Below are positions 10,127 to 42,428 of a stretch of DNA of 64,000 bases, piece after piece. The notes below the pieces were generated by a model that saw only the letters and a program-made list of their open reading frames with translations, ran no database searches and was not told the DNA's origin. This DNA is from Octopus bimaculoides (taxonomy: Eukaryota), in assembly GCF_001194135.2 (NCBI RefSeq), contig NC_068998.1:17559061-17623060 (forward strand), read 5' to 3'. The position numbers and the translations under genes were made by a program. How positions within the stretch are numbered: position 1 is the first letter of the stretch; each line of letters begins with the position of its first letter.

Positions 10127-10226
10127 ATGGCTGATGGAGAAACATATAAACCACAATGGAATTTGGTAGAGTTCACATTGCTCTCAATTTTTCCTATTCA
10201 TCTTTCATTCTTTCACATACATAAAG
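10127..10226 (+). CDS. SLC6-like exon 1 (MADGETYKPQWNLVEFTLLSIFPIHLSFFHIHK; N-terminus and degenerate TM1)
   Basis: Acceptor catcatttcag ends at 10125, ATG at 10127, donor AAAG|gtatgt (phase 1) matches exon 2. W..EF.LLS resembles the SLC6 pre-TM1 W....DFLLS. Confidence 0.75.
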
Positions 10227-13200
10227 GTATGTACCAGCTGATCTAAAATTTATAAAAATGTCTTTAAATCATCTTGAAAACTTTTTGCATGGTTTCTTTT
10301 TTCCTTCTTTTTTAAGGCTAAATTAACAAATGTGTATCTTTGTTAGCATAATTTAATGTCCTCTTTCCATGCTGGCATGGGTTGGGCAGTTTGACGGGAG
10401 CTGGCAAGTCAGAAGACTGTATTAAGCTGTACTGTTGGCTTTGGCATGGTTTCTACAGCTGGATGCCCTTCCTAATGCCAAACACTTTACAGAGTGAACT
10501 GGGTGATTTTTACATGGCACCAGCAGCAGTGAAGTCCTCAAGTAACTTGCAAAATGAGACCCCTCAACTGAGTGGGGAGTAATATTGAGGAAGGTGGCTT
10601 TGTACTATGTGATGAGAGGATAGAGTATGAGCAGGAGGAGACAGAAACAGGTATCTTGCAGTTGAGAAAGTACATAGCCACCCTAGTTGGAGGGTGGGGT
10701 GAGATGACAATGATGATGAAGATTTGATGGGTTGTATCTCCATATTAAATTGTAATGCCAAGCATTAGAATTGTTAGTCAGTCCTACAACATGTTAGTCA
10801 GTCCTAAAACCAGCAAAAGATAAAATTTTTGGATTCCTTTAACAATTTTGTTTCCTTTTTTTTTTTTATGTTAACCTATCATTATTATTTAAATTGACTT
10901 TCCCTTTCTTGTTCTTTCTGATGTATCAACACTGAACATAAGAGATTCCTGGTAATTCAAGCTATTTTTCTTAGTTTGCCATTTGCTTAAAATTTAATGA
11001 CTGTCCTTAATGAGAAAAAAATAGTAACATCATTAGCACATTAATACAACATAAATTGTTTTCTTTGTGAGGATGTCATTTTACATATCCTTTATAGATT
11101 TTAAGTTATTCTTGATCCTAAGATCATAACCAGATCCAACTGTCATTAATGGAAAGGCATTCCAACTGTGACCATTCTTGTCTTTTTATCAGTCATAATG
11201 TATCTGGGAATATATTATCTGTGTCTTACCTTTTCTTTTTTTTAAAGAGAAATTTGTTCCCTATTTCTAGCAAGTTGAGTGAATAATGGCTCCTGCAAAA
11301 AGTAGTAGAAAAGATTGTAAACAGCTGACAACTGGTATGTCAGTGTTCTACTGGGCCTTAATCTTTCTCTGATTTTGTTCAGGATCAATAAAATTTTTAC
11401 AAATAATATACTAGAGTTCGTTAAATCCTCAAAACAAAGTTGACTTTATGAAATCACTGGTAATATTATAAATAATTTTGTGTAATGTTCTGTAGTGTTC
11501 TGTTTTATTGTAATCAAATTAAATAACAATCTGTTAGTGATTATATCTTAAATTATTTTTCTTTTCCATTTCAGATTTGTCAGTGATAATTCATTTCATA
11601 TTTTTATCAGTGCTTTGTATTCCCCCCTTGTTTCTACAGCTGAAGTTAGGGGGACACTTACAAAAAGGAATTGTGGGAATGCTCTCAACCTATTTTCCTA
11701 TATGGAAAGGTAAGCTTATTAATAATTATCATCATTATCAACAATTTATGAGGTAATAAGCTGGCACAATCATTAACACTTCAGACAAAATGCTTAGCAG
11801 CATTTCTTCCAGCTCTTCATGTTCTAAGTTCAAGTCTTGCCAAGGTCAGCTTTGCCTTTCCTCCTTTCAGGGTTGATAAAATAAAGTACCAGTTAAATAC
11901 TGGGGACAATGTAACTAACTCATCTCCTCACTTCGAAATTACTGGTCTTGTGCCAACATTAGAAAGAATTATTAACAGATCATAAATAATAATGAACGTG
12001 ACTGTGTGGTAAAAAGCTTGCTTCCCAACCATATGGTTCCAGGTTCAGTTCTACTGCATGGCACCTTGGGCAAGTGTCTTCTACTATAGCCTCAGGCCAA
12101 TCAAAGCTTTATGAGTGGATTTGGTAGACAGAAACTGAAAGAAGCCCGTCATATATATGTATATATTTGTGTGTTTGTTCCCCCACCATCACTTGACAAC
12201 TGATGTTGGTGTGTTTACGTCCCTGTAACTTGGCAGTTCAGCAAAAGAGAGTGATAGAATAAGTACCAGGTTTACAAAGAATAAGTCCAAGGGTCGATTA
12301 CTTCGACTAAAAGGTGGTGCTCCAGTATGACCACAGTCAAAATGACTAAAACAAGTAAAAGTATAAAAGAATAAAATATTTAGTCCCATTCTTCTAAGTT
12401 GTCTTTCCTCTTCTAATAGTGATAAAATAGATACCAGTCATGTAATAGATTAGTTTGACTGGTTTTACCATTTTTCCTTATCAACAAAATGTTATTCTGA
12501 ATTTATTATTTTAATATCAAGAGTTTTGTATTTGAAATGAAAAAGTAAGAAATATTAATATACTTATAAACTTCCATTTTCTTTTTTTAATTTGAGACTG
12601 GCTTTTTAAACACAAAAAAATTAGGTTTTCTTCAAAGAAATTTTTTTTCACAGGTAAAATATAATTAAACAAATTTCAAGTTTGAATATTTTGTGTGTTC
12701 TGTTTTCTTGTAAAATTTTTAATTATTTTTTATTTAATTTGTTGTTTTTCTCCCTCTTTTACTCTCTCTTTCTCTCTCACTCTCTCTCTCTCTCTCTCTT
12801 TCTCTCTCACTCTCTCTCTCTCTCTCTCTCTCTCTGATAAAACTAGACAATTTTCTCTATAATGCTTCCCAAATAATTAATAGCACTTTTGTGATTTTAA
12901 AAGTGCTATCTGTTTACTTATTTTTAGAATTTGTTTCCATATGATTTACACTGCAGGATAACAAATCAATGATTTTGCTGCTTTACAGCAGAATATCTAA
13001 AATAAAGCTAAGAATTAAAATTATTTTCATTCCTCCATTGCTTATTTCTTAACTGCTTCAGTTGTGTAGCATAGTCTTTCTTCTTATCCACTGATCTGTT
13101 CTTCTGAGAAAGGTTGTAGTTGGCTGATTCAGAGTGATTTTGGTTTACTGGCTAAAGGGTTAGTAGTTTATGTTCTAATCACTACTAGCTTTTTTAACCT

Positions 13201-16200: not shown

Positions 16201-19200
16201 ATATAAACTTCTAATATCTAATTCCATTCCTTTGTTTCTTGAACTTACTTACACAGATTACTGATGGTATCGATCATGTTCAGGGATTCCCGCATTGGAG
16301 ATTGACAGTGACTTCAATGTTTTGGCCTGCTAAGCCATCATCAGGCAGTCCAGAAACTTCGAAATCACTGTCACAACATTCTTGTTTGAGAATGATAAAA
16401 CATATATATATATATATATATATTGCTTAATCAATACCAAAATAGTTTTTTGTGAAATTTGATGCTTCACTTTTTGTACATGTTTCTTATTTTTTTGTTT
16501 TTGTTTATTTCTGCAGGTGTAGGCATTGCAGCATTAGTGCATTTAATGTTAATTTGTATATACCAAGGTCCTGTTGTAGCAGAAGTGGCAAGTTATATGT
16601 TCATATCTGTAGCACAGCAGCCATATCTATGGGGTACTTGTGACAATTCATGGAATACAAATTACTGTTCTCCAGGTGTTGTAAGGTAAGATTTCCTTAA
16701 GTATATGCCCTATTTTATAATGGAACTCTTTAGTATTATTTTATATCGCAACAGGCATGAATGAAGGGTTAAATATTCCACTTCTCTGTCATGAGAGAAG
16801 GGTTTAGTTTCAATCTCACAGTGATAACACTTTTAGCAAGTATTTTCTTCTATATATTCTTGAGTGAAATTAGGTTAGCAAAAACTGTGAGGAAGCTCAC
16901 TGGATGAACTAGAGCTGTAATTCAAAAGGTTGGCTTCATCACAATGTCACACTAGGTATGCCTGAGAATTACATTAAGGATACATGTATTTGTGCGTTAC
17001 TCAACTACTTGCACTATAATATAACAGTTCCATTGATTGAGCCGTCGGATCAAAGCAGGCATTACATAGTAATTCTTAATTACATCGTGGCTCTCAGAAG
17101 TGTGTGGCTTGTAGGTCATTGGAATTTTGAAGGCTGCACAAAAAAGAAAATTATGTTGGCCAAATATTATCACAAAAGCGATGACACGATTTTTTTCTCT
17201 TTTTTTTTTTTAACCTTTTTACAACTACATTAATGATGATATTCTCTCATCTCCTACCATCATATCTTAATTAGAGCACTACAATAATTCTGCTACAGGT
17301 TGATTAGTGATTTCATCAGATGAAAGGTGCCATAAACAACAGTGTGAAAAGAAATCAATATTTGATAATGAACATTGTGTTACTTTTTTCTGTCTTCCCT
17401 ACTACTTATATTGAAATAGAGGTGTTTTGTGACCTATTTTTCAATTTGTTGCAGTTCTATAACTGGTTTGCCAGAAATGACAAAGAGATCAGCATATGAA
17501 TTCTATACGTTAGTATTATTTCTTTAACTCTTCTATATTTTCTATATTATATTAACAGTATTTATTTTAAATTTTTTTAGCTTTTTTACTTCACCAGCAG
17601 TTATGTTATTTTCTTCATAATTGTATAATTTCGCTTCGTTTTCTATAATTTACTTCATTAAATTATGAGTCTAGTTTAATGTAATTAGCAGTGTGCTTGT
17701 TTATTACATCTTTCTCAGTGAGTAACCAACAGACTTGATTGCCAATTTCTGAACATAGGTTTGATTCATTCCTCATAAACTTTATTCCTTTGCTGAGAAA
17801 ATATTTTATTAACGTTGAGTTATAATAAAAACAATTTAGTATTAAACTGAGGAATTATTCAGTACCTTTTGTAGAGTACATATTTATCATACTTTTTTCA
17901 GACTTTGAAGTCACAGTTACTACTTCTTGTAAATGTATAATGAAAATATTTTACATAGATATATCTATTTCCTGGTATATTTTAATTGATTTTCTTCTTC
18001 TTTAGTCATTTATTTTATTTTGGAGGTTGAGGGGAAAGTAGTCCAAGTATGCTGCTCAGTTTAACACATCACCTGGTCCTTGAGAGCCTCTCACATAGTT
18101 CATTCTGTTAAAAGCATTTGACAAGACTGCACTAAATGCCTAATTTGAATATCTGCAGTTCAGTTTTACCAGTTCAGGAAGGCATCACACAGTTATGAAT
18201 ACTACCCTGCTTCTCTTGTAAAAAAAAAAAAAAAAAAATTTTAATGTAATCTTCCATTGAGCTGACAGCACATACTGGTTTCAATTCTCTTATTCAAATT
18301 TATTTCAAACATACCAGTGATGCCCTTGAGAAAAGAATGACTGTCATATTCTCAATGTGCTATGAATTTGTGGCTGTATGGATTAAGTTTTTCAAAAAAT
18401 GAATATATATCAGTAAAGCAACATGTTCCTAAGCAGTTTTTTTTTTTTTTCCACAGGTTTGAATTCTGGCAGATTACTGATGGTATCGATCATGTTCATG
18501 GATTCCCGCATTGGAGATTCACAGAGACAGTCAGTCGGATGACTGTACCTATGTTGCCTATTGCGTCTGCATCAGTTTGGCTCCTGGTACTATTGATGGT
18601 AGCACTCGGCGGACGTGTCTTTGGTTGGGTTAGTACCTTTTTAATTATAACTACTTCATTACTCTACCTACTTTGTTATTGAAATAAATATTTTTCCTCA
18701 TTTGTATGACAGTTATATTTCTTCACTTCACTCCTACATCTGATAAGAAGTCATCAATCATATGAACTGTATTAGTTTCTCACAATTTCTGGAGAAAGTG
18801 ATTTACAGGCTTAATTATTCATCCAATAAGGTAATTTTGCTGTAATAAATTGCCACTTCATATATTAGCATCAAATAGAATATCTGATACTAGTGCTGCT
18901 CTTTTCCCTTTTATGTGTTAATATATAAGTTCTGGTTAGAGTAATAATAGTAATTTTTTTTTTGCGTGTTGTTGTTGTTGTAAAACATAAAGCTGATCTT
19001 TTCATCTCTAATCAATTTGTTTGCTGTGGTTCTTTTTCCCCTTTCATCATTTTCAGTCTCACAGTCTAACTATTTTCAATATCGAGGCAGATAAATATAT
19101 GTAAGTTGCAGTGTGTGTTTATATATGTGTGTGTGTGTATGTATGTGTGTATGTATGTATGTATATCTATCTATGTATGTATATATATGCACTATTAAGA

Positions 19201-23281: not shown

Positions 23282-23322
<41 letters not shown>

Positions 23323-27498: not shown

Positions 27499-27543
<45 letters not shown>

Positions 27544-28032: not shown

Positions 28033-28066
<34 letters not shown>

Positions 28067-28130
28067 ATGGTGCAAAACAAGATGGAAAAAATAGTACACA
28101 AATACCAAAGGTAGAGTTAACACACACACA

Positions 28131-28174
<44 letters not shown>

Positions 28175-30709
28175 TAAAACACTCGCAACCAAGTTGGTAT
28201 TTTCTTTATTAAAGAAAGAAAATCAAGATTACTTTTTGATCTTTTTTCTTTGTTGTTGAAAAACAGCATCAAAAATGTCTTTTTTTATATATTTGAAGCC
28301 ATTCTGTTAATGATTTTTTTGTCTTCAACATTTATAATTTATATCATTAATATAAACATTTAATTAAANNNNNNNNNNNNNNNNNNNNNNNNNNNNNNNN
28401 NNNNNNNNNNNNNNNNNNNNNNNNNNNNNNNNNNNNNNNNNNNNNNNNNNNNNNNNNNNNNNNNNNNNNNNNNNNNNNNNNNNNNNNNNNNNNNNNNNNN
28501 NNNNNNNNNNNNNNNNNNNNNNNNNNNNNNNNNNNNNNNNNNNNNNNNNNNNNNNNNNNNNNNNNNNNNNNNNNNNNNNNNNNNNNNNNNNNNNNNNNNN
28601 NNNNNNNNNNNNNNNNNNNNNNNNNNNNNNNNNNNNNNNNNNNNNNNNNNNNNNNNNNNNNNNNNNNNNNNNNNNNNNNNNNNATGATTAGGGGGGGAAA
28701 ATACTTTTAAATGATTAGGGGGGGAAAATACTTTTTCATGAAAAATTTTTAGAAAAATGTGACAGATATATTGGAATTATCTGAAATTTTATTTCAGAGA
28801 GTAACTAAATATTTAGATCTCCAGTTTTTTTTTTTTTGTTTTTTTTTTTTCCTAAGTTATGGTATTCAGATACTTTATATTGTGAAACCTGACATTACAA
28901 ATATATATAATTTTGGAATAAGCTATTTTAATATGTTTATATTCTTTGATAGTTGTAACTATGATCCTAGTTGAAAATATGATCCTTCAATATTTTATCA
29001 TATGTACTAATATCCTTTTGTACTTGTTCTTTTTATATTATAGAACATGGTTATTAATGATACTGATGTATGGTGTCTTCTGGATGCTGCCTACATTAAC
29101 TATGGCACCCTATCTTGGCAATCTAATACAAAAATCTCAAGCAATACTTAGTGATGTTCCTCTTAGTGGTGTGTAATAGTTTCTTTTATCTAAAACATTT
29201 CTTAGTATTATTTCTTGTCAGTTTTTATATATGTATAATTTGATTAGTAAAACATTTAAACAGCTGTTTTGTATAAAATATTAGGTATTATACTTTAATC
29301 TAACCTATCAGCATACATTTTTATATTCAGTATTACTTCCAGGTTGTCTAACTTCCAACATCTGCACCATATTCTTAATTTCTTGAAGATACAGCTAATT
29401 ATCTCTTATCAATACAAAAGGCATTTTATTATCAATTAACTGTTTAGCCTCTAATTGAATGTGTGACAAATCTTATATCCTGTATAACTTGTGTCAGCTA
29501 ATGTTTGACCTGCTGTTGTATTGGATGTTTTTTGACTTCCTATTGTCTTTTTAGCTAACAAAAAAAGAACCCAAAAACTTTTCTGGTTCTATTTCATTCT
29601 TAAGGCATTCATCTATAGAAAAAAAAATTGAGAAAAACGATATTACCTAAGTGGAACTGAATCAATATAAAGTTATCCTTTTCTCCAATCTTCAACGTTT
29701 TCTGTGAAACTGTTTTCAAGATACAAATACTTCCTATTTCAACCTAACTACTTCTTGTATCTTTGTAATCATCTTGATGATATCGTAGCTTTTCTGCTAA
29801 ACTTATATTACTGAGATCTAATCAGCCCCAAACTAGCTTATACAGTCTTTGTTGAGCACTCAGTTCTTCATTTCACATGTTGAATTGCCTTTTTTTCATC
29901 ATTGATACAAGTACTTACATATTCACTCTTTACATATTCACTATGTTCTATTTTTATTTCTGTTCTATACCTTTTCCCCTTCAGTTTCCACTAGTTTCTC
30001 TTTTCTAGGGGTTCTCAACCGTTTTTTTTTTTTTTTAATCTATGGACCCCCTTTAATTACTATTTTATTCTGGTTGACCCCCATAATCATTCGATATTTA
30101 AAGACTAGTTTTATAGAATATTATTTATTAATGTTTTTCTCTGCATTAACTTGTGTAGGTTGAACTCTGTAAAAAAAATTTTCAGGGGCCCTTAAAATAC
30201 TATTGTGGATCCCCAGTTTACTATTTTGTTGTGTGGATCCCCAAAAATCTGATGTGGACCCTGGTTGAGAACCACTGTAGACAAACTATGCTACTTGTCC
30301 CTTTAGTTACTACATTATTATTATTGTATAAATAAATTGTTCTGATGTTAGTCAGGCTTCGATTTATAAAAAAATTTCTCCTGCAATAGTCTTAACATTA
30401 TTAAATTCATTATCATTAAATTAGATCATAAATTTTTTCTTAATTTGATCATTCTACTCTTCAATATCTGTTTGATTAAAACTATCATCTCAAGACCTTA
30501 GGTTGTTCACTTAATGTTTTAATTTTATCGGAAGTAAAGTTCATTTCAAATTTTCATAACTAATATTTTTTTTTTCTAATTACAGGTTATCCTCTCATTT
30601 TTGATACCATGGCTACAGCCTTCAGCTATTTGCGCATCCCACCTGCATATGCCTTGTTATTCTACCTCTCCATCTTCTTATATCATGTTTTATTTCTGGT
30701 AAGCCAATT

Positions 30710-30771
<62 letters not shown>

Positions 30772-32343
30772 NNNNNNNNNNAAGTAAAAACTCATAAAGC
30801 AGAACAATAATTTCCCATAGTAGCAATGTTATAAACCATTAATTTATTCCCAGAAAATATTTTACCAGTAAAATTTGTAATACTCGTAAATAAATGGCAA
30901 TAAAACAACAGTAGAATGTAAAGAAGATTTTATGTAAAGTAAAAGAAATGTCAAAATCATTTATTATAAAAAATATTATTATTATTATTGTTTTCTTAAT
31001 CACTCTCACTGGCACTAGACTCATGCACACCATCACTTGTAGACGCAATTGCCAATTCAGAAGCACTCATAGGTGGACTTGTAGATTTCTTTTCAAAAAA
31101 CAAGTCTAGAGTTATTTCTTAAGAAGAAGCCTTTTTTTCGCTCTCTATAAATTTCTCAGTAACACGCAGAGGCATTTGTTATGGTAGTAGAAACTTTTGC
31201 ACTTTGTTCAAAATTTGGATCTTGTGCTTGAAAAATAAAACTCATAAACCCAGTGTCTTGCAAAGTGAGTCCTCATAAAGTGAGGTATTACTGTATTTTT
31301 ATTGTTTTGCACCAGATCAAACCTGATCTAGCAGATTATGATCAGAAACATTCTAGTTGTAGTTATTCCATATTTTTTGTTTATCTTGGATTACTTTGTC
31401 TTGTACGATAGGGTGGAATTAGAGAGAGATTTGACTACTATTTCTCACACATCAAGCAGTCTCATAGAGCCTCTAGAGTTTGACTCGTTAATTTGATCTA
31501 TTACTTGAAAGAATAGAACAAGATCTCTTTGTTTATTGTAATATTTACTTCAATAGATATGATTTTTCATTAAAGCCACTTTGATAGAATTATAACATTT
31601 AGAAGGATTAATAAACAACAGAATATGGTGTCATTTGGGCAAATATCCCTTATATAATCATATCTGAAATGGCAAAATATAACCCATACAAATACATGAA
31701 GAGGTTGTAGAATTCATTATGATAACATATTGTGTGGAGTGACAGAAACTACTGTTTAAAGCACTTGTCCTTGTTCCAGAAGGAGAGAATATAGAAGTGT
31801 TATTGTTTTGGTCACAATTGTGAATGAAAAAGACTACAAAAGAATAATTATAATGTGAGAGCCAATGTAAGTAGTGTGGAGGGTGAATTATCTGGTAGGA
31901 GGTACAGAATGAGAACAGTAGGACAGAGGGGTTGGGCAAAGTCTGTTAACAAGATAGAGGTCAAGAGAAATGAGCTGGCCATTGAGAGAGTGAGGTCAAA
32001 TAAAGGTGGGAGATAGTATTAAAGAATGCATACGAAAGGAAACAGAAAAGCAAAAGGATATGCACATAGTGGCACTGCTGCACACATGAACAAAAGGGGA
32101 AAGAATGGGAAAGGGGTGATATAGGAAGCTTGCTGAAAAAATTGAGATCAGTAAGGAGTGGTCAAAGGTCATTGAGGAAGTAACAAAAATTTGTAGTAGT
32201 TTATAACAAAATCTGGGGAAGAAGCAGAGAGTAAGCATAATAAATAAAATGGTATACAAGTACAATCCAACTATATGCATTGTATATACTTTGCTCTTAC
32301 TAATATAGTGTTAGCACGGTGAGCAAACTGATATATCTATCTA

Positions 32344-32388
<45 letters not shown>

Positions 32389-34423
32389 CAAAAAATATAT
32401 ATGCATGTATACACACATATATGTATATACTTTCATCTACATGTGTATATANNNNNNNNNNNNNNNNNNNNNNNNNNNNNNNNNNNNNNNNNNNNNNNNN
32501 ACATAGGAAAACAGAAAGCCACTTGGAATTATTCATCAGCTGCCTCTATTCTAACTCGACGTTTCGAAATATATATATATATATATAATAATAATACAAA
32601 AAATATATATGCATGTATACACACATATATGTATATACTTTCATCTACATGTGTATATATATGCATATCAGGGTACAGGACGTTAGAACAATGAACTACA
32701 GACAACGGAACAAACACATACGAAAACGGAAAGCCACTTGGAATATTCCTTCATCAGCTGTCTCTATTCTAACCTGACGTATATATATATATATATATAT
32801 ATATATACCAGTTGAATCTGTAACTGTTAAACACTTCATTAACAGTTCAGATAAATCACATCTCATTAACAGAAAAAGTATTCATTTCCTCAACCTTATT
32901 CATAAAGGTAATAAAATACTTACTTAGATAACATCTTGATAACCTCTCTGCTAAACAACAAACCTCTCAAGCCATTCAAAACATTGCCCTCATTAACTCC
33001 ATTTAAGTAATTTCTCACAAACATTCTCCACTATCTCTTTCTCTTTCTCGCATCTATATTGAAATCAGAAAGTCTATAACACAGTTGAATCAATGACCTT
33101 TTACAAGTCTTTGACTCTACCACCATCATTGTTTCAAGGTCCACTTTTCCATGCTTTCATGGGTCAGACAGTGTTTCTAGAAACAGATTTTCTGTAGCCA
33201 GATTCTCTTCTTGTCACCTCTCCTTGTAGAATATTGGAAATGAATGAAACAGCTTGTATGATTATGATGCTCATTTATGACTATCACACTATTAAGACAA
33301 AGAGAGAGAGACACACACACACACACACACAAATTAACTTCTTGCAGTTTGTCTACTAAATCCATTCAGTCAGTCTGGTGCCACTCAGTAGGACTGAGCC
33401 CAAGAACGTGTGATTGAGAATCAAACTTCTTAACCACACACCCATATCTGCATGGCTTTTTTTTTTTTTTTTTTTTTTTCCAACAATTTGAAGTGGTTGG
33501 CATTTGGAAGGGCTTCCAGCTGTAAAAACCATGCCAAAACTGACCTCGCTTATGCTGGTGCCACATAAAAAAACACTCAGTCCACTCTACAGGGTGGTTG
33601 ATGTTAAGGGCATTCAGCTATAAAAACCATGTCAAAACAGACACAGTTGCCTGGTGTAATCTTCTACCTGGCCGGCTCCTGACAAACCATCCAACCCGTG
33701 CCAGCATGGAAGGCAGATGTTAAATGATGAATCTTATTTCAAGATATCTACAAAACTTACTTGGTGACTACATTTTCTTAACTTTTTGTCACAGTTCAAA
33801 TTATTAAGGAGTTGAAATTTAGAATTTCATTTGAGACTACCTTTTTAAGTTCAAATTTTCTCAGATCCAGTTTAACTAACTGCATTCATTTCACACAAAA
33901 AAAATGGTTTGTGTATCTAATCCAAATGGGTTTATACCTTTCTTATATTCTTTTACTGGGTCCAGTCGTTGGACCTTGGCCATGCTGGGGTACCACCTTC
34001 AATGGTTTTGGTGGATCACATCTTATCCCATTACTTTATTTTTTATATATTTTATCAACTCAGGGAAGCTGGAAGACAAAGTTAACTTGGATGTAAAGGG
34101 ACATAACTAAATGCTGCAAGATATTTTGTTTGATATTGAACTAGTGATTCTATCATCCTCTGTAGAGACAGATAGAGGCATACATACATACAAACACAAG
34201 TATTCAAAGAGATTAAAACTCTCACACACAGGGCTTTAGAAAAAACTCTTCTCTTGGCTACCACTCTGTGATTTCAAACTTAGAACCAAGTGATTGTGAA
34301 AGCAAACTTTTTAACTACAAGTCTGCATATGTTCCCATAATCTAAAAACAGTGAATATAATTTACTTCCAATATCCTTTAGTGCTTTGTTCAAATTAAGA
34401 AATTTAATTTATTGTTTTAAGAA

Positions 34424-34460
<37 letters not shown>

Positions 34461-37400
34461 TCTTTCAAATTGCTTGGTATTATTTCTAGAGCTGTTTCTG
34501 TTTCAGTGTGTAGCTATTCTGACTTTGGTGGACAACATTATGGAATCACTGATACCATGCTTGGAGAGAAATTCCATCAATAAGACATTCATCAATGTTG
34601 TTGTCACTTTTCTTGTTGTTGGTGTTATCAATGCTTTGGGAGTTCCACACACCACAAATGTGAGTATTACTTTTATTGTCATCTCACCAGATTTTTTGCT
34701 TTTCATTCTTTTGTGATTGATAAAATAAGTACCTACCTAGTATTGGGATTGATTTAATCATCTATAGCCTGTTTCCTGTACATATGCACACACAATAATG
34801 TGGACTAAGTTAGAAATTATCATTATTATTAAATGCAACAGGACAAGAAGCACACCAGACCTTATTTAATTTTATTATTTTGAAACTATTAATTTAAAAT
34901 TAATTTATCATTCCTCTCCCAGATATGAATAGAAGATAATATCAAGTACACAAGTCATTCAGAAAATATCATTAGAGCCATAACGAATAATGAAATACAT
35001 GTGATATTATGTGAAGTACACTTCTATCAAGTTGCTACAAACATTGGAACATTCGTGTGTTTTGTAATTTATAGATATATCAAATATGTGGAATTGTTAT
35101 TATTAACTAGTTTGGAGAGTTCATTCTAGTTTGGATGTTTGTTAAAACTTGCAATGATTGTCTAGTAAAAGAATTTGTTAAATGGCTTGTGGGACGTCAA
35201 AATAATTTTGTTAATAATTCTTTAAATTTTTTCAGTATAGTTATACATCTTCATATTAGCTACCTTAATTTATCTTAGAAGCCCAAGTAATGTCATGACT
35301 TAAATACAGCTATCGATTTATTACATTGCTTTTCTTTGTGTTATTGTAGGAATTTATAACACTAAAACGAAAAAACTTAATCATTTAAAACATTTTTTTA
35401 TTCAACATTCTTTCAACTTACTTTCAATATTTTTCTCTTAAATTCTTTAAATTCTGTTAAGAAAATAAATCGCTTTCCATAAGCTGTCAAAAGTAAACCA
35501 GTCCCATGAAATGCACATTTTTCATGCTGTGACCCTCAACTGGTTATTTGTAAAATAAAACTCTCTACTGCTTAGCAAAAAGAAAGCATTCTCTCTTAAG
35601 TGATTACCAATGATGCTGTTGATATTTAACTTTATAATGTTTTCTTTGTTTGATGTTTAGGCTGGACCCTACTTCAATACCCTAATGACTGTGTCATTGG
35701 AGCGGCTGGTATTCTTGGTGGTAGTCCTCACTTTTATTGGACTTATTGTGGTCTATGGTAAGTCATGGCAATTCACAGAGATACTTCCAATTGTATATTA
35801 TAAAATAATATTTCCTCTATACGCTGACTTACGCAAACACTGTTTAGTCATGGTTATTTTGTTTACTTTCTACATAGATGAGGTAGATATCTTCAGGACT
35901 ACAAAGATTATTACAGCTATATTATATCTATACAAACATGTAAAAACATTTAGTTCCTGAGATGTCAAAGTGAAGCATAAGTTTGACAACTTATTCATAT
36001 TTTAATGTGAAAAAAATATATTTCATAGAACTTTTTAAAAAAACCCCACTTAATCTAATGCAAGTTCTTTGTAAAGTGCTCAAAAGAATTTGATACAATG
36101 CAATATGAGACGGGGTTCAGAAGACAAAGATATTGAAATGAGTAATTTTTTTAATAGTTAATAATAATTCTCATAACGAAGCTGTAATGTTGTTATTTAT
36201 AAAAGCCATAAATGAATTTGAAATTTTGATATAATTCTTACATGGTAATACATTCCTCCCATTATATTTTCTGTCTATGACATAAAGTAACAACATTTTT
36301 GAAGAACTGAATTCACAATCTTACCAATTTTGCTACTAGAACAAGCAAAGGCATAAACATAACTTTCCATAATTCCACTTCAACAAACTAGAGATTTCAC
36401 ACCTAATTATTATGCCTTCATGATTTTATTAAGGTGTTAGTATAATGCAGTTAATTATTAATGTCCTAGAAATTATATTTGTTGCTTTCTTTCTTTCTGT
36501 ACAGCAAAGCAGAATTTTTCATTAGCTGAACGCATCATGATGGGTGTTTGGTTTGCCCTGTCCTGTTTGGCAACTGCTGTGAGTGAATCTTAAATATTTC
36601 ATGCTTATATATTTTTCTGTACTATATAGATTCAAGATATACCCATATAGATTCAGTACATTTCACTAAGAGTTTCACCTTTCACTACACAAGCACTTTC
36701 CTCCACCATGTCACCCTTGTGCATTACATGTCTATTTTACAATAAACAATTCATTCAATACCTAATTACTTGTCTTTCAAATTCACCTTACAAGCACACA
36801 CAGACAAGATGTTGCACACTGTACATGTGCTACTTGCTGAACTTGATTGCTTCTGTCTGCAACATTATACACACTTAAGTATGANNNNNNNNNNTCAAAT
36901 CGTCCAACCCATGCTAGCATGGAAAGCGGACGTTAAACGATGATGATGATGATGATGATGATATCATATTTGCAATGAAATGAAAAAAAAAAAAAATCAA
37001 GTGCTGAAGATAAATTTGGTCAAAAACAAAGGAATCAATTCTGAAATTCAAATCGGTAGAAATGTTTCCTTCATAGAGAAGACATATTATATCTGCTGTA
37101 TGAAAGCACTTTTGTGTGGCAGATTTTCATGTCACTTTTGATTCGTCTCTTCAGTTTACCAAAAAGAAAAGAGAAAAAAAAAAAGGAAAGAGAAAAAAGC
37201 CCTATTCCTCCAGTTGTTCTAAGGTCTGGAAAATATGAGTAAAACTGTGCTTCGCTGAGGTGTTCAGACAACACCAAAACATGTCTGGAGTTGTCACTGT
37301 ACTTACCAAAGATTACTATATTTCCTGATGTATAAGACACACTCTCACAGAACATGAACCTCTGCTTTTCGGGGCTGAAGAGAAAGGTATATTTTGTGGG

Positions 37401-40400
37401 AGAACAAATTTAACATGTTTCATCATACACTCATGCATTTGGTATGCGATCCGTAATACAGTCGCAGAAGACGCATTACAAGTTTTGTTACATTATAAAA
37501 CAGCGCATCACATAAAAAGTATTCCGCAGTTGTTTCCCTTGCTTCTGGCTGTTTTCAACGTTTGCCTGTTCCTCTGTTTATCACGAGTGTGGTTTTCACT
37601 AAAATGTATGGAGAAAACATTATATTGGACATGCTAGGAAAATTGCCCTTGTCATCATACAAATATAACATACCTTTCTTTTCCCTGCGCTTCGTACGAT
37701 CAGAAATAATTTATTTTGATTCGCTTTCGTGTATTAAATCTGTTCCGAACCAAAATGCTGGATTGTTGATTTGCAGACAATCGTACAAGTCATTTTATAG
37801 TTATTATTCCATTATGTAAGGTACATTACTCTGCTTTACTCAATTTTATTCTTTTCAGTTGAAAACTAGTTATTGGCCGTGCTTCCTTATATTGGTAGGG
37901 GTCAATAGTAACTAGGATTATATGTCGTAAGTCAGAGATTAATGTAAGCAAAAATTACATTTTGTAAAGAAGAAAAAATAGAATTAAGTGCAAATTTGCA
38001 AAAAAGAAAATTTTCAATCCGTCTGTGCTATGGAAAAAATCAATGCTTAGACCATAAAAAAAAAATGCAATTGGAAACGTTTTGATGTTCAAGGGAGATA
38101 ACTTGTATTTATGTCTGAAATTTCGTTTAAGTGGAGTGTTTGAATTACGCGTACATTTGTTATTAGAATTTAAAACTTTCCACTGTCCGAGTTATTCATT
38201 AAATTATGTATGTATTAACGTTTTCTTTTTGTTGTTGCTGTTCAGAAGTAAACTTCTTAACCACACAGCCATATATATATAAACCATGCACACACACACA
38301 CACACATACATACGCACACACACGTTCTGTTATTACACACACACTTGCAGACCCTCGCGCACGCACACATATTCACCTCTTTTTTCACTCTCCTGTCTTA
38401 GAAAGAACTTTTCCTCCACCACTTCCTCTTCCGGTCCTTCCACAATGTAACCTCGTGGACATCGGTGCTGATTTTTTCTTCCTCCGTTTTCCCCTTCTTT
38501 GAACTTTCCTTGTTTTCGACGAAGAGCTCCGCTCGAAACGTCATACTCTCCCTCTTTCCTTTCCCGAGCGTCTAGTAACACTATCCGTATCACGTCCTCA
38601 CGTTGTTGTTTTTTGTTATTGTTTTGTCTTTTTTTAAACTATATATATATAGAGAGAGAGAGATAGAAAGAGCATGGCAAACGGACGTTAAATGATGATG
38701 ATGAAAATAGAGAATCCTTACAGTGATTAATTATTCCCCCTTAGAGTTCTGCGTTTAAATCTTATATCATATAATCGATAAAAATAAAGTACCAGTCAAG
38801 TGTTGCTGGAGCTGTTTTAGTTAACTTTATCCTCATCAAAACTTTGTGGCCTTCTGCTGATGTTAGAAATCAATAATTTACATTGATTAAAATTTTTTAC
38901 ATGAAAAAAAACATAAATATCATCATCATCATCGTTTAGCGTCCGTTTTCCATTCTGGCATGGGTTGGATGGTATTACTGGCCTGCTGGAGAACTGCCCC
39001 AGCCCCAATTGATTGTTTTGGCATGGTTTCCAAACCTTTCCTAATGCCAACCACTTTACAGAGTGTGCTGAGTGCTATGTGGCACTGGCATAGGTGCATT
39101 TACATGGCACCAGCATAAGTGCATTTTGAGAAGACACATCAAGCTAAATAAAATCACAGCTATCCATAAATACATGCATGTCTTAACACTAAACAAAATG
39201 TCTTGGAGGGGTTTTTTTTTTCCTTTCTTTCTATATTTGCATTTCTGTATTTGCATTCGAATTCTATGTGTCTGCATTGTCTGTCAACTCCACAGGATAA
39301 ATAAAATAATTACTAGCAATACATACATTGAGTATCATTTCGCTTTGTTATATATGTTTCTTTAAATATATTTGAAGTCGGTTCACATTATGAACAAGCC
39401 TACATCTACATGCTTTGTCAATCTTCCATAAAGTAATTGAGGAGTCCTATTACAATATTTTGTTTATTGGGTGGAATGGAAGGCTTTCATGGAGGAGACC
39501 TTAAATTTCTTGTGAGATTTTAGATTGTATATAGCACAGTTATTGTACTTGTTATTAGGAGACACAAAGACAGACTTGACTAACTGCTCTGGTTTCACAT
39601 CCCACTTAGATCGTCTGTGCCTCTCTTCTTTCCTGATTCAATAAAATTGGAAATATTTTAAATGATGGAGCATGTGGATGTGGGAGAATGGATTGCAATC
39701 AACTGTAATCTCTCTCCCCAAAATGTGTGACCTTGTACTTTTATCAAAAAACCATTATTGTTATAATTAAAATGTAATTTTCAATTCTGTGGTTGTTTGT
39801 CTTTACATGGTAGAATTTCTTAAACATAATTTGGTTATTGATAATGATTCATTTTTGTTCTGCTGTTTCTTTTTCCTCAGGGTATTTGGGTTTATAAATT
39901 TGTTCATGGCCAAGACGAGCTGAATTACAAAGGCAGTGTATACTCTGAAACTTGGGAAACTATTTCATGGATTGTATCTGGTGTACCATTTGTGTTCGTA
40001 CTTGTTGGAGCCATTCATGCTATTATGGTAGGACGTGGTCCCTGTTGTCAGGTACATATCTCTTACTCTTTTATTTTCTTCCTGAGTTCGCTCATTGCAC
40101 TGTAGTGATGCCTGGAAATCACCTCCAAACAATTTAGTCAATCTTATCAAAACCCAGTAAGATTTATTCCATCAATCTATATTTACTGAGTGACCAAGTT
40201 ACTTTTTAACCAGAGCTTTTTAAACACACACTTGCACACATGAGTATACACTTACACATGTGAGCATGTATGCTTACGCACTCTGCAAGCACATACTCTC
40301 ACACACGTACACAGGCATTTCACTGTTTCTATCTATCAAACTTTTATTCACAAGATATTGTTCAACTTAAGACGTTTGTTGAAGGTGTAGCCCAAACTTA

Positions 40401-42428
40401 GAATTACAAGGTTATGAAGCAAACTTTTTAACCAAACATCAATATTTGTGTGTATTTGAAAAGCAGTTTCAGAACTCTGCTATGATACGATCTAAAGTAA
40501 TACTTTATTAAATCATCAAAAGAAAAATAATCAATGTTCTCTTTTATTCAATAAAAGAGAACCAATCTAAAACGGAATTAATTAAAAAATGTATTGTCCA
40601 TAATATATAATTTTGCATTCAAATTTCTTATAGGTAATAGTAAGTAATATCATTTCAAATTGAGTTTTCTTTTGCTCAAGAATTGATTTAATAAAAGATT
40701 ATTTTAATTGATATTACAGGGGAATTTTTTAACTACTTTTCAAATATTTCCATGTTTGAAAGCCAGAAATTAGATACAATAGTTAGCAATAATTGAGTGT
40801 GTGATTCTTTATCTTCACATTCTATGAAGTTAGAATGTTTATTTTACAGTATTTATATTTAATGTGGTTCGTAGATCAATTATCAAGTTCTGTTAGGTGT
40901 CACTTTTTTTTCCTTGATATCATGTCTGACAGAAAAAAAATTCTAAATTCCAGAAATATGTTAGTTAGTTCCATTCAAATTATAGTAATCTCATTTACTA
41001 AATTGTCACTGATTAAAAAATAACTTATGGCCTTTAAGTGATGTGGTGCTGCGGTATGATATTAATCAGCTACTGAAAACTATGAATTGTTTTTGTTTCA
41101 AGATGATTTCTTTTCTATAGGGGTTATGGTTTTGGGATTATATTACCATCCTGGTGGTCTTTGAGTTCAGATCTTGCTAATACACCCTTGATCAAAGCAT
41201 GAACCCCTTCTTGCTCTTCAATTTGACTAGTTGACAAGTAGGTTTCACTACAATTGGGTTGTATTCATGTATAAAAATAGTTGATATTGTGTAGGCATTC
41301 CAACTATGTTTGCATAAAGAACAATAAATGTAAAATACTTTATTTGATCAAACTACAATGGTTTCTATGGTCGATATCATGTAAAAATTGTACAATGACA
41401 TTTTCCATTGCAAAATTCTAATTTTTAGTTTTAAAAAATTGTTTATCTGAAGAAAAAAATGTTGCAAACTGAGTAAGGTAGCTACGAGATATTTTTTTTC
41501 TAAAGTTCACAATAGACATAAGGCTAATGAAAGGGCAAATGTGAATTATTTATTGAACTATGTCAAAAAGCAATTTACTTCGCTTGCTTGAATCTACCCA
41601 TTTTGTAGACATAACATAAGGTAATATAACGGTTATCATAATGAAATATAATGATGAAAGCAAATAATTTATATCCATCATAAAAACTGGATAGATACAT
41701 TTTCAAATTGACTACAGGTATCCCCACATTCTGGGAGCATTACACACCTGAAAATTTTGTCAGAACTTCATTGTTACATGAACGTCAATCCAAAACGTTG
41801 CTTTTGCATTGAGGAATACCATGTTATGGCAAGATTTATGTAGAAGGTGCATATATCTTTACATGTTGTATATAATGTACTTTTGAAATGTACAAAGGGG
41901 TACTGAAAAGTTCTTGGTTTTGGGTAAAAGAAAGTACAAGAGGATCAGTTAATTATCATTTTATTCACCATATTCTTCTCCCAGATTCACACACTTATTG
42001 CAACAGTCTTTCAGTTTTTCTAAACCCTGTGAAAGAACTTAGAATTCCCTTAATGCCAGGAACTTTTCAGCACCCCTTTGTAATTAGCAATTAATTGTTG
42101 ATTAAGTTTCATCAAGATATAATCTCTATATAAATATAAATTCAGAGGAACAAAGTGTTAAATGTTTGTTATATTCAAATGTTGCCATAGATTATGTTAT
42201 TTGAATATCTTGTTATTATACATACACATATGTATATTTATTTATGTTTCTGTATTTCAGCGTTTCCTTGGTACATTCCAGGAGTCTTCAAGACAATCCC
42301 GCTTAGACAATGGAAGGACGTACCATCGCGCTGAGCCTAGCGCCCCTCCGTATGTCTACATGGACGGAGATGCATTTCCCTTGGACCATTTACCATACAA
42401 GTCAGATCCAGACCTGAACCCATTGTGA
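10127..42428 (+). CDS. SLC6/NSS-family-like 12-TM membrane protein, highly divergent; 14 coding exons, 599 aa. join(10127-10226,11575-11709,16517-16685,17455-17508,18457-18628,22525-22686,25580-25686,29044-29168,30586-30698,34507-34659,35661-35757,36505-36578,39881-40051,42261-42428)
   Basis: Manual exon chaining: every intron is GT..AG, phases match at all 13 junctions, the total is 1800 nt with no internal stop, and it ends in TGA. SLC6 landmarks occur in the correct order: CIPPLFLQLKLG (cf. GIPLFFLELALG), FPIWKGVG (cf. PLFKGIG), LWGTCDNSWNTNYC (cf. LPWxxCxNxWNTxxC), SAYEFY..QITDGID (cf. SPAEEFF..ISxGI), TIPDF, LWFG, SGYPLIF (cf. SGPGLAF), AGPYF (cf. GGxYV). The family call is from motif recall. 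The 5'-most coding exon is the least certain part. Confidence 0.9.
11575..11709 (+). CDS. SLC6-like exon 2 (TM2: LSVIIHFIFLSVLCIPPLFLQLKLGGHLQKGIVGMLSTYFPIWK)
   Basis: ttttccatttcag acceptor, AAG|gtaagc donor, open in phase 1-1, IP.F.L.LG motif. Confidence 0.92.
11998..12376 (+). mobile_element. tRNA-derived SINE family A (full length, CpG-decayed)
   Basis: Head gtgactgtgtggtaa...ggttccaggttcagt, body gtggatttggtagacagaaactgaaagaagccc, tail gactaaaacaagtaaaag; homologous to the copies at 52924, 59663, 61593 and 63810. Confidence 0.9.
15100..15432 (+). mobile_element. SINE family A, degenerate copy
   Basis: Recognisable caccctgggcaagtgtct and gatagaataagtaccag segments. Confidence 0.7.
15691..16189. 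repeat. Long inverted repeat: arms 15691-15900 and 15979-16189 (~210 bp), 78-bp spacer; tRNA-headed SINE/Penelope-like unit
   Basis: The arms read directly as reverse complements with scattered mismatches (e.g. cgacggatatttgtcc / ggacaaatatccgtct; ggggttagtagccc / gggctactaacccc). The right unit has an A-box TGGTGTAGTGG and a B-box GAGTTCGATTCC. The spacer has three copies of a 16-bp unit (cccatggggtaatatg). Confidence 0.95.
16254..16312 (+). repeat. 59-nt near-identical copy of part of SLC6-like exon 5 (18470-18528)
   Basis: cagattactgatggtatcgatcatgttca(g/t)ggattcccgcattggagatt(g/c)acag(t/a)gac: three mismatches. Confidence 0.95.
16517..16685 (+). CDS. SLC6-like exon 3 (TM3 and start of EL2 with C-x8-C)
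   Basis: tttctgcag acceptor, AAG|gtaaga donor; encodes VGIAALVHLMLICIYQG...LWGTCDNSWNTNYCSPGVV; overlaps ORF 16459-16689. Confidence 0.93.
17455..17508 (+). CDS. SLC6-like exon 4 (54 nt, EL2: SITGLPEMTKRSAYEFY)
   Basis: tttgttgcag acceptor, AC|gttagt donor, phase 2-2; SAYEFY matches the SPAEEFF position of SLC6 EL2. Confidence 0.8.
18457..18628 (+). CDS. SLC6-like exon 5 (end of EL2 and TM4)
   Basis: Poly-T ccacag acceptor, TGG|gttagt donor; FEFWQITDGIDHVHGFPHW...VWLLVLLMVALGGRVFGW; overlaps ORF 18362-18682. Confidence 0.9.
22040..22372 (+). mobile_element. SINE family D with tRNA head and tgtgtccttgagcaagacacttta core (further copies at ~16775-17065, 53350-53690, 58945-59195)
   Basis: A-box tggcctagtggttaag, B-box-like ctgaattcaatacc, then gtgtccttgagcaagacactttatttcacattactccagtccactcagctg. 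Confidence 0.8.
22525..22686 (+). CDS. SLC6-like exon 6 (TM5 and EL3)
   Basis: tttactttcag acceptor, ACA|gtaagt donor, phase 0-0; ILAVVTPIAISCTLVVLGYGL...IFTIPDFKL. Confidence 0.9.
23373..25280 (+). mobile_element. 5'-truncated, decayed Tx1/L1-clade non-LTR retrotransposon (RT and C-terminal zinc-knuckle region, 3' UTR)
   Basis: VKVLVKKL..QTCSIPKRSIHHNL..INLDQLKAFDRVNH (RT), later HADV at the YADD position, CPRC near 24608, AATAAA at 25251 and an (ATT)n tail. Many stops and frameshifts. Confidence 0.9.
25580..25686 (+). CDS. SLC6-like exon 7 (TM6: KCMSSFVHIQMALPLWFGIAPTMGKMTGFGKIHKN)
   Basis: Poly-T ccag acceptor, GT|gtaagt donor, phase 0-2; HIQMALPLWFG aligns to the canonical QIFFSLGPGFG. 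Confidence 0.88.
29044..29168 (+). CDS. SLC6-like exon 8 (TM7)
   Basis: tattatag acceptor; the donor TG|gtgtgt is weak but its phase 1 is required by exon 9; TWLLMILMYGVFWMLPTLTMAPYLGNL; overlaps ORF 28946-29176. Confidence 0.85.
30006..30277. mobile_element. hAT-type MITE, same family as 52555-52850
   Basis: Termini (t)aggggttctcaacc / ggttgagaaccactg with ggacccc subterminal motifs; no clear TSD. Confidence 0.7.
30586..30698 (+). CDS. SLC6-like exon 9 (EL4 and TM8)
   Basis: ctaattacag acceptor, CTG|gtaagc donor; GYPLIFDTMATAFSYLRIPPAYALLFYLSIFLYHVLFL. Confidence 0.9.
33455..33730 (+). mobile_element. SINE family C ending in (GAT)n (same orientation at ~27860-28030, 36895-36962, 51700-51970; opposite at ~10340-10610, 38925-39120, 48190-48400)
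   Basis: Shared 3' end ccaacccatgc.agcatggaa...ggacgttaaacgatgatgatg. Confidence 0.8.
34507..34659 (+). CDS. SLC6-like exon 10 (end of TM8, IL4, TM9)
   Basis: tttctgtttcag acceptor, AAT|gtgagt donor, phase 0-0; inside ORF 34474-34716. Confidence 0.9.
35661..35757 (+). CDS. SLC6-like exon 11 (TM10: AGPYFNTLMTVSLERLVFLVVVLTFIGLIVVY)
   Basis: gatgtttag acceptor, ATG|gtaagt donor, phase 0-1. Confidence 0.9.
36505..36578 (+). CDS. SLC6-like exon 12 (IL5 and TM11 start: KQNFSLAERIMMGVWFALSCLATA)
   Basis: ttctttctgtacag acceptor, GCT|gtgagt donor, phase 1-0. Confidence 0.88.
37307..37374 (-). other. Candidate antisense exon (68 nt) inside SLC6-like intron 12
   Basis: Minus strand reads atacctttctcttcag|CCCCGAAAAG...ATCTTTG|gtaagtac, with near-consensus acceptor and donor. 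One open frame (PEKQRFMFCESVSYTSGNIVIF). Confidence 0.5.
37441..38700. promoter_or_regulatory. CpG-enriched patch inside a CpG-depleted gene body; candidate antisense or internal promoter
   Basis: Manual count gives about 40 CpG in ~1.25 kb versus about 4 in 12421-14300. A minus-strand donor AAAG|gtatgt lies at 37674/37673. Confidence 0.45.
38380..38620 (+). mobile_element. Penelope-like element terminal remnant with a minimal hammerhead-like motif (related remnants at ~16313-16395, 32500-32782, 60860-61021)
   Basis: tcgacga-a-GAGC-tcc-GCTC-gaaac-gtc at 38516-38542 matches the CUGANGA/stem II/GAAA/GUC layout of PLE-associated hammerheads, with changes at core positions 3-4. Confidence 0.55.
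39881..40051 (+). CDS. SLC6-like exon 13 (TM11 end, EL6, TM12)
   Basis: ttttcctcag acceptor, CAG|gtacat donor; GIWVYKFV...YSETWETISWIVSGVPFVFVLVGAIHAIMVGRGPCCQ (cf. YPxWAxxIGW). Confidence 0.92.
41891..42082. mobile_element. mariner-derived MITE, TA-flanked
   Basis: TIRs tacaaaggggtactgaaaagttc / gaacttttcagcacccctttgta. Confidence 0.85.
42261..42428 (+). CDS. SLC6-like exon 14 (cytoplasmic C-terminal tail, stop codon)
   Basis: tgtatttcag acceptor, 55 codons then TGA; the 3' part of ORF 42162-42428. Confidence 0.88.
   Translation, partial: RFLGTFQESSRQSRLDNGRTYHRAEPSAPPYVYMDGDAFPLDHLPYKSDPDLNPL

Follow-up and report, generated by a model that had tools for sequence, protein, structure and literature searches.

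What does a member of the SLC6 family do when the residues that bind its ions and substrate are gone? This question is raised by a gene on the forward (+) strand of Octopus bimaculoides DNA, at positions 10127-42428 of a window of 64,000 nucleotides (nt), which is the whole stretch analyzed here (RefSeq assembly GCF_001194135.2, contig NC_068998.1, positions 17,559,061 to 17,623,060). SLC6 is among the best-understood families of secondary transporters. An earlier reading of the locus, made from its letters only (the sequence-only reading), had proposed that the gene is intact, that the SLC6 fold is retained and that the canonical ion and substrate motifs are missing. In the present analysis, it was found that the encoded SLC6-like protein most probably does not work as a Na+/Cl- symporter. 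With a confidence just short of even, it may be derived from an SLC6 transporter, have given up transport and act from its cytoplasmic side.

The gene itself is sound, as had been claimed. Its 14 exons are separated by 13 introns that are all of the GT-AG type, and the spliced coding sequence (CDS, exon chain rebuilt independently) stays open over 1800 nt, yielding 599 residues and a stop. All 13 exon-exon junctions are found, base for base, in L001, an intronless 2336-nt octopus RNA contig from the Logan collection of sequencing-run assemblies (SRR3401912), which encodes the protein P0001. This run is described as an octopus meta-transcriptome (PMC11662614). The coding sequences of the window and L001 align over 1800:1800 nt without indels at 96.7% identity, and the exon chain is thereby supported by RNA. 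The ratio of non-synonymous to synonymous substitution rates (dN/dS, NG86) between the two is 0.048 (dS 0.14; 51 synonymous and nine non-synonymous differences). Against P0002, a Sepia-like decapodiform orthologue whose cluster includes a Sepia pharaonis protein, the ratio is 0.06 (dS 1.26); in the Logan collection, 66 blocks contain P0002 as contigs of transcript size. Proteins of O. sinensis/vulgaris, Argonauta and the Sepia-like decapodiform are orthologues of equal length (599 residues). The gene is transcribed and under strong purifying selection, with ratios far from 1, and the earlier statement that it is not decaying was upheld. The gene is already annotated and its model public: residue for residue, the translation agrees with XP_014776734.1 of this species (CM046618.1:17.57 Mb, GCA_001194135.2), automatically named a sodium- and chloride-dependent taurine transporter in RefSeq.

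Fold, ion sites and central pocket

The full protein is matched by the SNF profile of Pfam (PF00209) with 65.4 bits (E=5e-18, gathering score 27). This hidden Markov model (HMM) search, proposed with the sequence-only reading, covers positions 41-515 of the 524 model positions and leaves the first transmembrane helix (TM1) outside. A partial translation of 393 residues was already matched (E=1e-12). With phmmer, sequences of the PDB are hit at E ~1e-9, mainly from TM2 to the second extracellular loop (EL2), and a profile of the mollusc family aligns residues 31-544 of the protein with TauT (E=4e-17). Homology to the canonical SLC6 or neurotransmitter:sodium symporters (TauT (SLC6A6), BGT1, GlyT1, dDAT, SERT and B0AT1) thus extends over TM2-TM12, with the 12-TM LeuT fold and the EL2 disulfide as predicted common features. 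The octopus protein differs from them by its very short N-terminus (10 residues) and shares 15-19% identity with them.

An AlphaFold2 model was built on P0001, which differs from the window protein at 9 of 599 residues, together with the family alignment. It contains 12 TM helices (predicted TM-score 0.74); TM1 is broken at F22-P23 in the model, which leaves short helical segments at 13-19 and 22-29. The best structural match in Foldseek is dDAT (4xph, E=2.6e-14, TM-score 0.73/0.81). The top 50 matches are all SLC6 structures (dDAT, TauT, DAT, NET, GAT1, GlyT1, SERT and B0AT1) with 15-19% identity, and the TM-scores of dDAT, TauT, DAT, NET, GAT1 and SERT are 0.7-0.8. The cysteines of the EL2 disulfide (C120 and C129) are invariant among the mollusc relatives described below and align with the pair in BGT1 and SERT (C200-C209). 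The 12-TM LeuT-type fold is therefore predicted to be kept, and the disulfide with it, in agreement with the sequence-only reading.

Individual positions were compared in a MAFFT alignment of the window protein with 15 members of a mollusc clade of divergent SLC6-like proteins (defined in this analysis as clade A), 10 more distant relatives, 27 diverse motif-bearing canonical SLC6 proteins and human SERT, whose numbering is used for the columns. Ion and gate residues that are 85-100% conserved in the 27 canonical proteins are replaced in the 15 clade A proteins. In TM1, which reads WNLVEFTLLSIFPIHLSFFH in the octopus protein, the helix is 8-10 columns shorter than in canonical proteins and contains no GxGN. 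The sequence-only reading had described TM1 as about 10 residues too short; this length holds, but the missing part follows SFFHIH (the end of TM1b and EL1 in the MAFFT alignment) instead of preceding FPIH. G100, N101, W103 and R104 are each present in 25-27 of the 27 canonical proteins and are absent or variable in clade A. At G100 of the S1 pocket (Gly in 27/27) clade A is variable and the octopus has L26, while R104 of the outer gate (Arg in 27/27) is not conserved in clade A and corresponds to H30.

All side-chain ligands of Na1 are replaced in the octopus protein. N101, which also serves Cl- (Asn in 25/27), is Ser in 11, Thr in three and Ala in one of the clade A proteins (octopus: S27). 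S336, likewise shared with Cl- (Ser in 26/27), is Ser in 11, Ala in three and Thr in one (octopus: A276), and N368 (Asn in 17 and Asp in eight of 27) has become Tyr in 11 and Phe in four (octopus: Y309). The remaining Cl- ligands are Y121 (mostly Val in clade A; octopus: H40), Q332 (Gln in 23/27, mostly Leu in clade A; octopus: H272) and S372 (Ser in 24/27; nine Ser, four Cys and two Trp in clade A; octopus: W313), so that none of the four canonical side chains of the Cl- site is found in the octopus. The Y121 and Q332 columns are mostly non-polar in clade A and carry His in cephalopods. At Na2, D437 (mostly Asp in canonical proteins) is replaced by Met in 13 and Leu in two proteins (octopus: L377), and S438, which also lines the S1 pocket (19 Ser and five Thr of 27), by Phe in 12 and Tyr in three (octopus: F378). 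The column of G94, which together with V97 provides the TM1 carbonyl ligands of Na2, is deleted. The number of polar residues at the eight ion-ligand columns falls from 7.5 in canonical proteins to 3.4 in clade A and to 2 in the octopus. At E493 of the outer gate (Asp in 23/27), 12 clade A proteins have Asp, two Thr and one Ile (octopus: T440).

The alignment reproduced the motif list of the sequence-only reading: besides the lack of GxGN, YYN of TM3 is YQG, QIFFSLGPGFG of TM6 is HIQMALPLWFG, GLDS of TM8 is HVLF, and TM7 has neither Asn nor Ser at N368 and S372. Its statement on the lost ion ligands stands for most canonical positions; several of the losses are, however, specific to the octopus. 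By these columns, the octopus is the extreme case, while the pattern of core site loss is clade-wide.

Further replacements lie in the pocket and in TM2. E136 (Glu in 27/27) is Gln in 15/15 clade A proteins (octopus: Q55) and in nine of the 10 other spiralian relatives, and A138 (mostly Ala or Ser) is Lys in 15/15 (octopus: K57). In TM6, G338 of the S1 pocket (mostly Gly) has become Pro (octopus: P278) and G340 (Ala or Gly) has become Trp (octopus: W280), each in 15/15; T439 of the S1 pocket (mostly Gln) is Leu in 15/15 (octopus: L379). Y176 (Tyr in 24/27) varies between Phe, Met, Leu, Gln and Ile, with Q95 in the octopus. The central-pocket columns thus hold conserved bulky hydrophobics, with P278, W280 and L379 invariant. 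Summed over 20 pocket columns of TM3, TM6, TM7 and TM8, the side-chain volume is 2638±62 Å3 in canonical proteins, 2959±99 Å3 in clade A and 3168 Å3 in the octopus, and the mean hydropathy of the pocket columns is +1.0 in clade A versus -0.06 in canonical proteins. Alignment columns and residue volumes together suggest a core that is filled and hydrophobic.

Distribution, phylogeny and constraint

The members of clade A share a short TM1, QxK in TM2, LPxW in TM6, TMGK in the third intracellular loop (IL3), MAPY in TM7, VDN in IL4, KQNF..ER in IL5 and EPxAPPY in the tail. The window protein carries all of these motifs, and 71 columns are invariant in an alignment of 16 cephalopod, gastropod and bivalve sequences. 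When proteins were searched with the partial 393-residue translation as query, the matches were two cephalopod proteins of 599 residues and a mollusc set of 583-621 residues at 35-37% identity. In an exhaustive profile search over 1.84 billion representatives, only 22 proteins were found with E <1e-30. Members of the mollusc clade, which come from cephalopods, gastropods and bivalves (Solemya among them), exceed 560 bits. A second tier at 150-270 bits comprises a chiton, a nemertean, second paralogues of Haliotis, Mya and Magallana, the brachiopod Lingula, the annelid Owenia and flatworms. Canonical SLC6 proteins reach about 50-106 bits, and some of the highest of these scores (about 76-98 bits) belong to arthropod inebriated (ine) and ine-like proteins.

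In a neighbor-joining (NJ) tree (Kimura-corrected distances, 100 bootstraps), clade A is recovered in 100/100 bootstraps, and the chiton protein, which also has a short TM1, joins it in 97/100. The second paralogues of Haliotis (XP_046562757), Mya (XP_052773213) and Magallana (XP_065925569) form clade B together with Lineus XP_064630502, again in 100/100. All divergent spiralian proteins (clades A and B with the relatives from Lingula, Owenia and Macrostomum) are grouped apart from canonical SLC6 in 100/100 bootstraps. Clade B and these relatives share with clade A the replacement of E136 by Gln, Lys or Arg at A138, Trp at G340, PT(M/L)G after TM6, APY in TM7 and the loss of N101, D437 and S438. 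They differ by a TM1 of full length that carries the degenerate motif VGLxGxxxFPY and by the lack of the PPxY motif in the tail. The truncation of TM1 and the PPxY tail are thus specific to the mollusc branch, judged from these sequences.

As the divergent spiralian proteins form one group that lacks the ion sites, the loss of these sites is ancient and Spiralia-wide. It is as old in the clade as the separation of the mollusc classes. The sequence-only reading had thought of a possibly lineage-specific protein; this did not hold, for gastropods, bivalves and a chiton have proteins built in the same way, within the wider spiralian clade. The sister group within canonical SLC6 is less clear. The ine proteins are among the top scorers in the profile search and several clade members are automatically named ine-like, but ine is not recovered as sister group in the NJ tree, and long-branch effects are likely. 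In contrast to the octopus clade, ine proteins have retained GLGN/S-VWRFPY, E136 and the motifs of TM6 and TM8, and their N-termini are long. A literature search for the clade or for its site loss returned no description; the published octopus SLC6 phylogeny covers SERT orthologues only.

Automatic names within clade A conflict with one another and include taurine, betaine, proline, GABA 'ine-like', XTRP3, B(0+), GABA transporter 1 or 3 and glycine transporter.

The distribution of constraint along the protein also differs between the two groups. TM1 ranks first among the 12 helices in canonical SLC6 (followed by TM2, TM8 and TM6) and 12th in clade A. Mean conservation in clade A is 0.80 for the intracellular loops, 0.66 for the helices and 0.54 for the extracellular loops, whereas the three are about equal in canonical proteins. 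The highest value is reached by IL2 (0.90), followed by IL5 (0.85), IL1 (0.80) and IL3 (0.77). In the tail, which is disordered in the model (residues 538-599, predicted local distance difference test (pLDDT) <50) and otherwise variable, EPSAPPY is conserved to about 90-100% (APPY at 572-575). Read from the alignment, constraint in the mollusc clade has left the core (TM1, TM6 and TM8) and now lies on the cytoplasmic loops and PPxY. At the motif level, a PPxY in a predicted accessible cytoplasmic tail is what a ligand of Nedd4-family WW domains would present.

Two further observations concern the C-terminus and the synonymous sites. In most members from gastropods and bivalves, the last three residues are -T-R-I or -S-Q-I and resemble a PDZ-binding motif, and cephalopod proteins have no such end. 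Codons 366-496 (30657-39907, TM8-TM11, mainly exons 10-12) show a proportion of synonymous differences of 0.43 against the decapodiform orthologue, compared to about 0.63-0.78 in most other regions; the proportion of non-synonymous differences is also at its minimum there (0.023). The unusually low synonymous value suggests that an additional constraint acts on the RNA (e.g. through splicing signals or a structure related to editing) or that mutation is locally rare.

Possible roles: receptor or adaptor versus altered carrier

How could such a protein work? In the reading preferred here, the canonical Na+/Cl--coupled alternating-access cycle could not run. The core would be packed shut while the fold is kept, giving what may be called a 'pseudo-transporter'. 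The conserved IL1, IL2, IL3 and IL5 would then form the working surface together with the disordered tail and its invariant PPxY, and the protein would serve at the membrane as receptor or adaptor for partners in the cytoplasm. It would be sorted by, or would recruit, Nedd4-type WW-domain ubiquitin ligases. This non-transporting reading is favored because TM1, the helix of gate and substrate binding, is shortened and shows low conservation, because the pocket columns carry bulky hydrophobic side chains and vary in part, and because conservation is highest on the cytoplasmic loops.

Ndfip and the subunits of ENaC are PPxY-bearing adaptors or targets of Nedd4-family ligases. The octopus protein resembles them at the motif level by its invariant APPY in a disordered cytoplasmic tail, and its membrane domain is unrelated to theirs. 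Within SLC6, SNF-12 of Caenorhabditis elegans is described as a signalling component that is needed for the activation of STA-2 in epidermal immunity, and not by any activity in transport (PMC7043892). The likeness to the octopus protein lies in SLC6 membership and in this signalling role as described, with no evidence of orthology. In yeast Ssy1 and Snf3/Rgt2 and in human SGLT3, the transporter fold is kept, transport is lost or minimal, and signalling is cytoplasmic (PMC5890159). By analogy, they may serve as functional model for the octopus protein. They differ from it in belonging to other families (APC/AAP, MFS and SSS) and in possessing recognizable ligand sites and long signalling tails, whereas the octopus termini are short.

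Several points weigh against a non-transporting protein. The loss of canonical ligands is no proof that transport is lost, and some other LeuT-fold carriers work without Na+. The helices TM2-TM8 are still well conserved. In most non-cephalopod molluscs, Ser is still present at S336 and S372, as is Asp at E493. The plugged pocket is deduced from alignment columns and residue volumes, the link from PPxY to the ligases is one of motif level, and the mean pLDDT of the AlphaFold2 model is only 66. The numbering rests on the sequence and presumed helix boundaries of human SERT, in which the key residues fall at the expected positions.

The main rival explanation, which is possible though on the doubtful side, is a carrier that is ion-independent or coupled differently. 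Access would still alternate, and a substrate (possibly a hydrophobic one) would be moved without Na+/Cl-. Such a carrier may be facilitative, or H+-coupled with Lys57/Gln55 of TM2 in place of the bound cation. The invariant K57 and Q55 may indeed provide a built-in charge that replaces the cation; K57 is invariant in clade A, and Lys or Arg stands in its column in eight of the 10 other spiralian relatives. The fold is complete, with all 12 helices under selection, and TM1 is still modelled with its break. The break of TM6 retains P278 and W280, which would also be expected of a new substrate site. These features have to be set against the truncation of TM1, which is the moving gate and substrate-binding helix and yet the least conserved helix in the clade, and against the unconserved R104 column. 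The pocket columns contain about 320-530 Å3 more hydrophobic side chain, and several of them vary freely among the mollusc classes, as at I172 (Arg/Met/Ile/Val/Gln) and at the Y176 column mentioned above. The peak of conservation on the cytoplasmic loops, away from the core, likewise argues against a carrier.

It is highly improbable that the protein is an ordinary Na+/Cl--dependent transporter of taurine (or GABA, proline or betaine), as its automatic names would have it. RefSeq and other pipelines do name clade members as taurine, GABA (ine-like), proline, betaine or XTRP3-like transporters, and the Pfam SNF match exceeds the gathering score. However, the names contradict each other, and identity is 15-19% to solved SLC6 transporters and 17-19% to human TauT structures. 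With the profile, TauT scores 65 bits, no better than SERT or GlyT1, compared to more than 560 bits within the clade. The protein groups with the divergent spiralian proteins in the NJ tree, apart from canonical SLC6, and the TM1 GxGN and most side-chain ligands of the ion sites are missing. By sequence comparison, XP_014776734.1 does not qualify as an orthologue of SLC6A6 (TauT). The last explanation, a decaying pseudogene or an assembly or gene-model artefact, could draw on the four N-gaps within the gene span and the one just upstream, on the 59-bp duplication of an exon 5 segment in intron 2 and on the strong divergence from the family, but its probability is practically negligible and it is refuted by 14 in-frame exons with canonical splice sites, by gaps that are all intronic, by junctions identical in RNA, by 599-residue orthologues in the other cephalopods and by a dN/dS of about 0.05.

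For the family as a whole, a tentative scenario, held with rather less than even confidence, is that of an ancient Spiralia family (molluscs, brachiopods, annelids, nemerteans and flatworms) in which the transporter core was disabled. In molluscs, TM1 would have been shortened and the core packed with hydrophobic residues, and the fold would have been re-used as receptor or adaptor via the cytoplasmic loops and PPxY. If true, a clade-wide 'pseudo-transporter' lineage would be recorded here for the first time in the neurotransmitter:sodium symporter family. The TM1, TM6 and TM8 sites are held to define SLC6, and a clade that lacks them at a dN/dS of about 0.05 represents a natural experiment on the LeuT fold, as well as a tractable example of what may be an animal receptor or adaptor derived from a transporter. 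For dozens of entries in RefSeq and UniProt from molluscs, brachiopods, annelids, nemerteans and flatworms, the transporter names (taurine, GABA, proline, betaine, XTRP3) are without sequence support. This misnaming will mislead transporter inventories in cephalopod neurobiology and in the study of mollusc osmoregulation.

Gene structure and neighboring sequence

The window is AT-rich eukaryotic DNA (34% GC) with eight N-gaps. All exons are on the + strand. Exon 1 contributes 100 nt of CDS (10127-10226) with the short N-terminus and the shortened TM1 (W11-H30, 10157-10216), and exon 2 (135 nt, 11575-11709) encodes TM2 and IL1, including the clade-invariant Q55-L-K57 at 11637-11645. TM3 (YQG at 16561-16569), the start of EL2 and the cysteines C120/C129 (16639-16668) lie in exon 3 (169 nt, 16517-16685). 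The small exon 4 (54 nt, 17455-17508) encodes a part of EL2, SSITGLPEMTKRSAYEFY; it was found by tblastn with P0001 and its junction was confirmed. Exon 5 (172 nt, 18457-18628) carries the GFPHWRF motif of EL2 and TM4, and exon 6 (162 nt, 22525-22686) TM5 and EL3. Exon 7 (107 nt, 25580-25686) holds TM6, where HIQMALPLWFG with the invariant residues P278 and W280 spans 25601-25633, and TMGKMTGFGK of IL3 at 25643-25672.

TM7 is encoded by exon 8 (125 nt, 29044-29168), with Y309/W313 at the N368/S372 columns and the invariant MAPY at 29102-29113. Exon 9 (113 nt, 30586-30698) covers EL4b and TM8, with HVLF (30684-30695) at the GLDS position. IL4 (invariant D388 and N389) and TM9 follow in exon 10 (153 nt, 34507-34659), TM10 in exon 11 (97 nt, 35661-35757), the IL5 motif KQNFSLAER and TM11 in exon 12 (74 nt, 36505-36578), and EL6 and TM12 in exon 13 (171 nt, 39881-40051). 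Exon 14 (168 nt including the stop, 42261-42428) encodes the disordered tail with the clade-invariant, PPxY-type EPSAPPY at 42333-42353. The sizes of 135, 125 and 113 nt resemble those of conserved exons in SLC6 genes. P0001 as tblastn query recovers every exon, whereas human SERT gives weak matches only (TM2, TM3/EL2 and a few others).

Four gaps fall within the gene span, at 28369-28683 (intron 7), 30772-30781 and 32452-32500 (both intron 9) and 36885-36894 (intron 12), and none of them touches coding sequence. Because the junctions of L001 are identical and its CDS aligns without indels, no exon is missing at the gaps. Downstream, the start of the 3' untranslated region (UTR) at 42429-42577 (+) matches the 3'UTR of L001 at 84% identity.

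At the 5' end, positions 10002-10126 (+) form the 5'UTR part of exon 1 and match nt 250-374 of the L001 5'UTR at 97.6%. This stretch adjoins the assembly gap at 9681-10001, which is thereby placed in the 5'UTR or upstream of it. The sequence-only reading had considered that a different TM1 exon might be hidden in this gap or further upstream. Such an exon is ruled out by in-frame stops 5' of the ATG in both cephalopod transcripts, and the sole alternative 5' exon carries no TM1 motif. This exon, at 5646-5692 (+), encodes MFSQVGFMKSTELMD plus AG in an open frame with a GT donor; its acceptor would be 10126, and the N-terminus would be extended by 16 residues. An identical 16-residue extension is present in a 615-residue isoform model of O. 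vulgaris (CAI9736169.1), so the gene probably has two promoters or two 5' ends. Positions 863-976 match nt 110-231 of the L001 5'UTR at 81%. They may belong to a repeat or represent a first exon without coding sequence, some 9 kb upstream; between this match and that of exon 1, 18 nt of the transcript remain, which would fall into gap 9681-10001.

No second SLC6 gene and no extra SLC6 exons were found on either strand of the window, apart from the 59-bp duplicate. It lies at 16254-16312 in intron 2, about 2.2 kb upstream of the part of exon 5 that it copies (18470-18528, QITDGIDHV.GFPHWR), is 94.9% identical to it and is absent from transcripts; it may be an exon-fragment duplication or an assembly artefact. 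Two candidates for a further TM11 were rejected. An open reading frame (ORF) at 33946-34056 has 38% identity to TM11 of SERT (MLGY..WFW, E=0.83), but it lies out of order in intron 9, is missed by the canonical and clade HMMs and is probably due to chance. A TM11-like ORF at about 37077-37160 is in no transcript.

The introns also contain a dispersed repeat family with copies of 71-92% identity at 10340-10600, 27860-28000 (-), 33491-33729 (-), 36895-36937 (-) and 38935-39074, with one more at 51928-51960 (-). As the copy at 36895-36937 directly adjoins gap 36885-36894, this gap probably lies inside a repeat. A block of about 40% GC at 23200-25250 (intron 6) holds many frames of 80-140 residues on both strands and looks by eye like a decayed retroelement; three of its + strand frames, compared with Pfam, had no match. 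In the part of the window 3' of the SLC6-like gene, no other protein-coding gene was recognized. Two transposase remnants are located there: one at 49021-49521 (+) with a Tc1/mariner-type helix-turn-helix (HTH_Tnp_Tc3_2, E=1.5e-12), and a pogo/Tigger-type DDE_1 fragment at 55781-56158 (+, E=1.2e-12).

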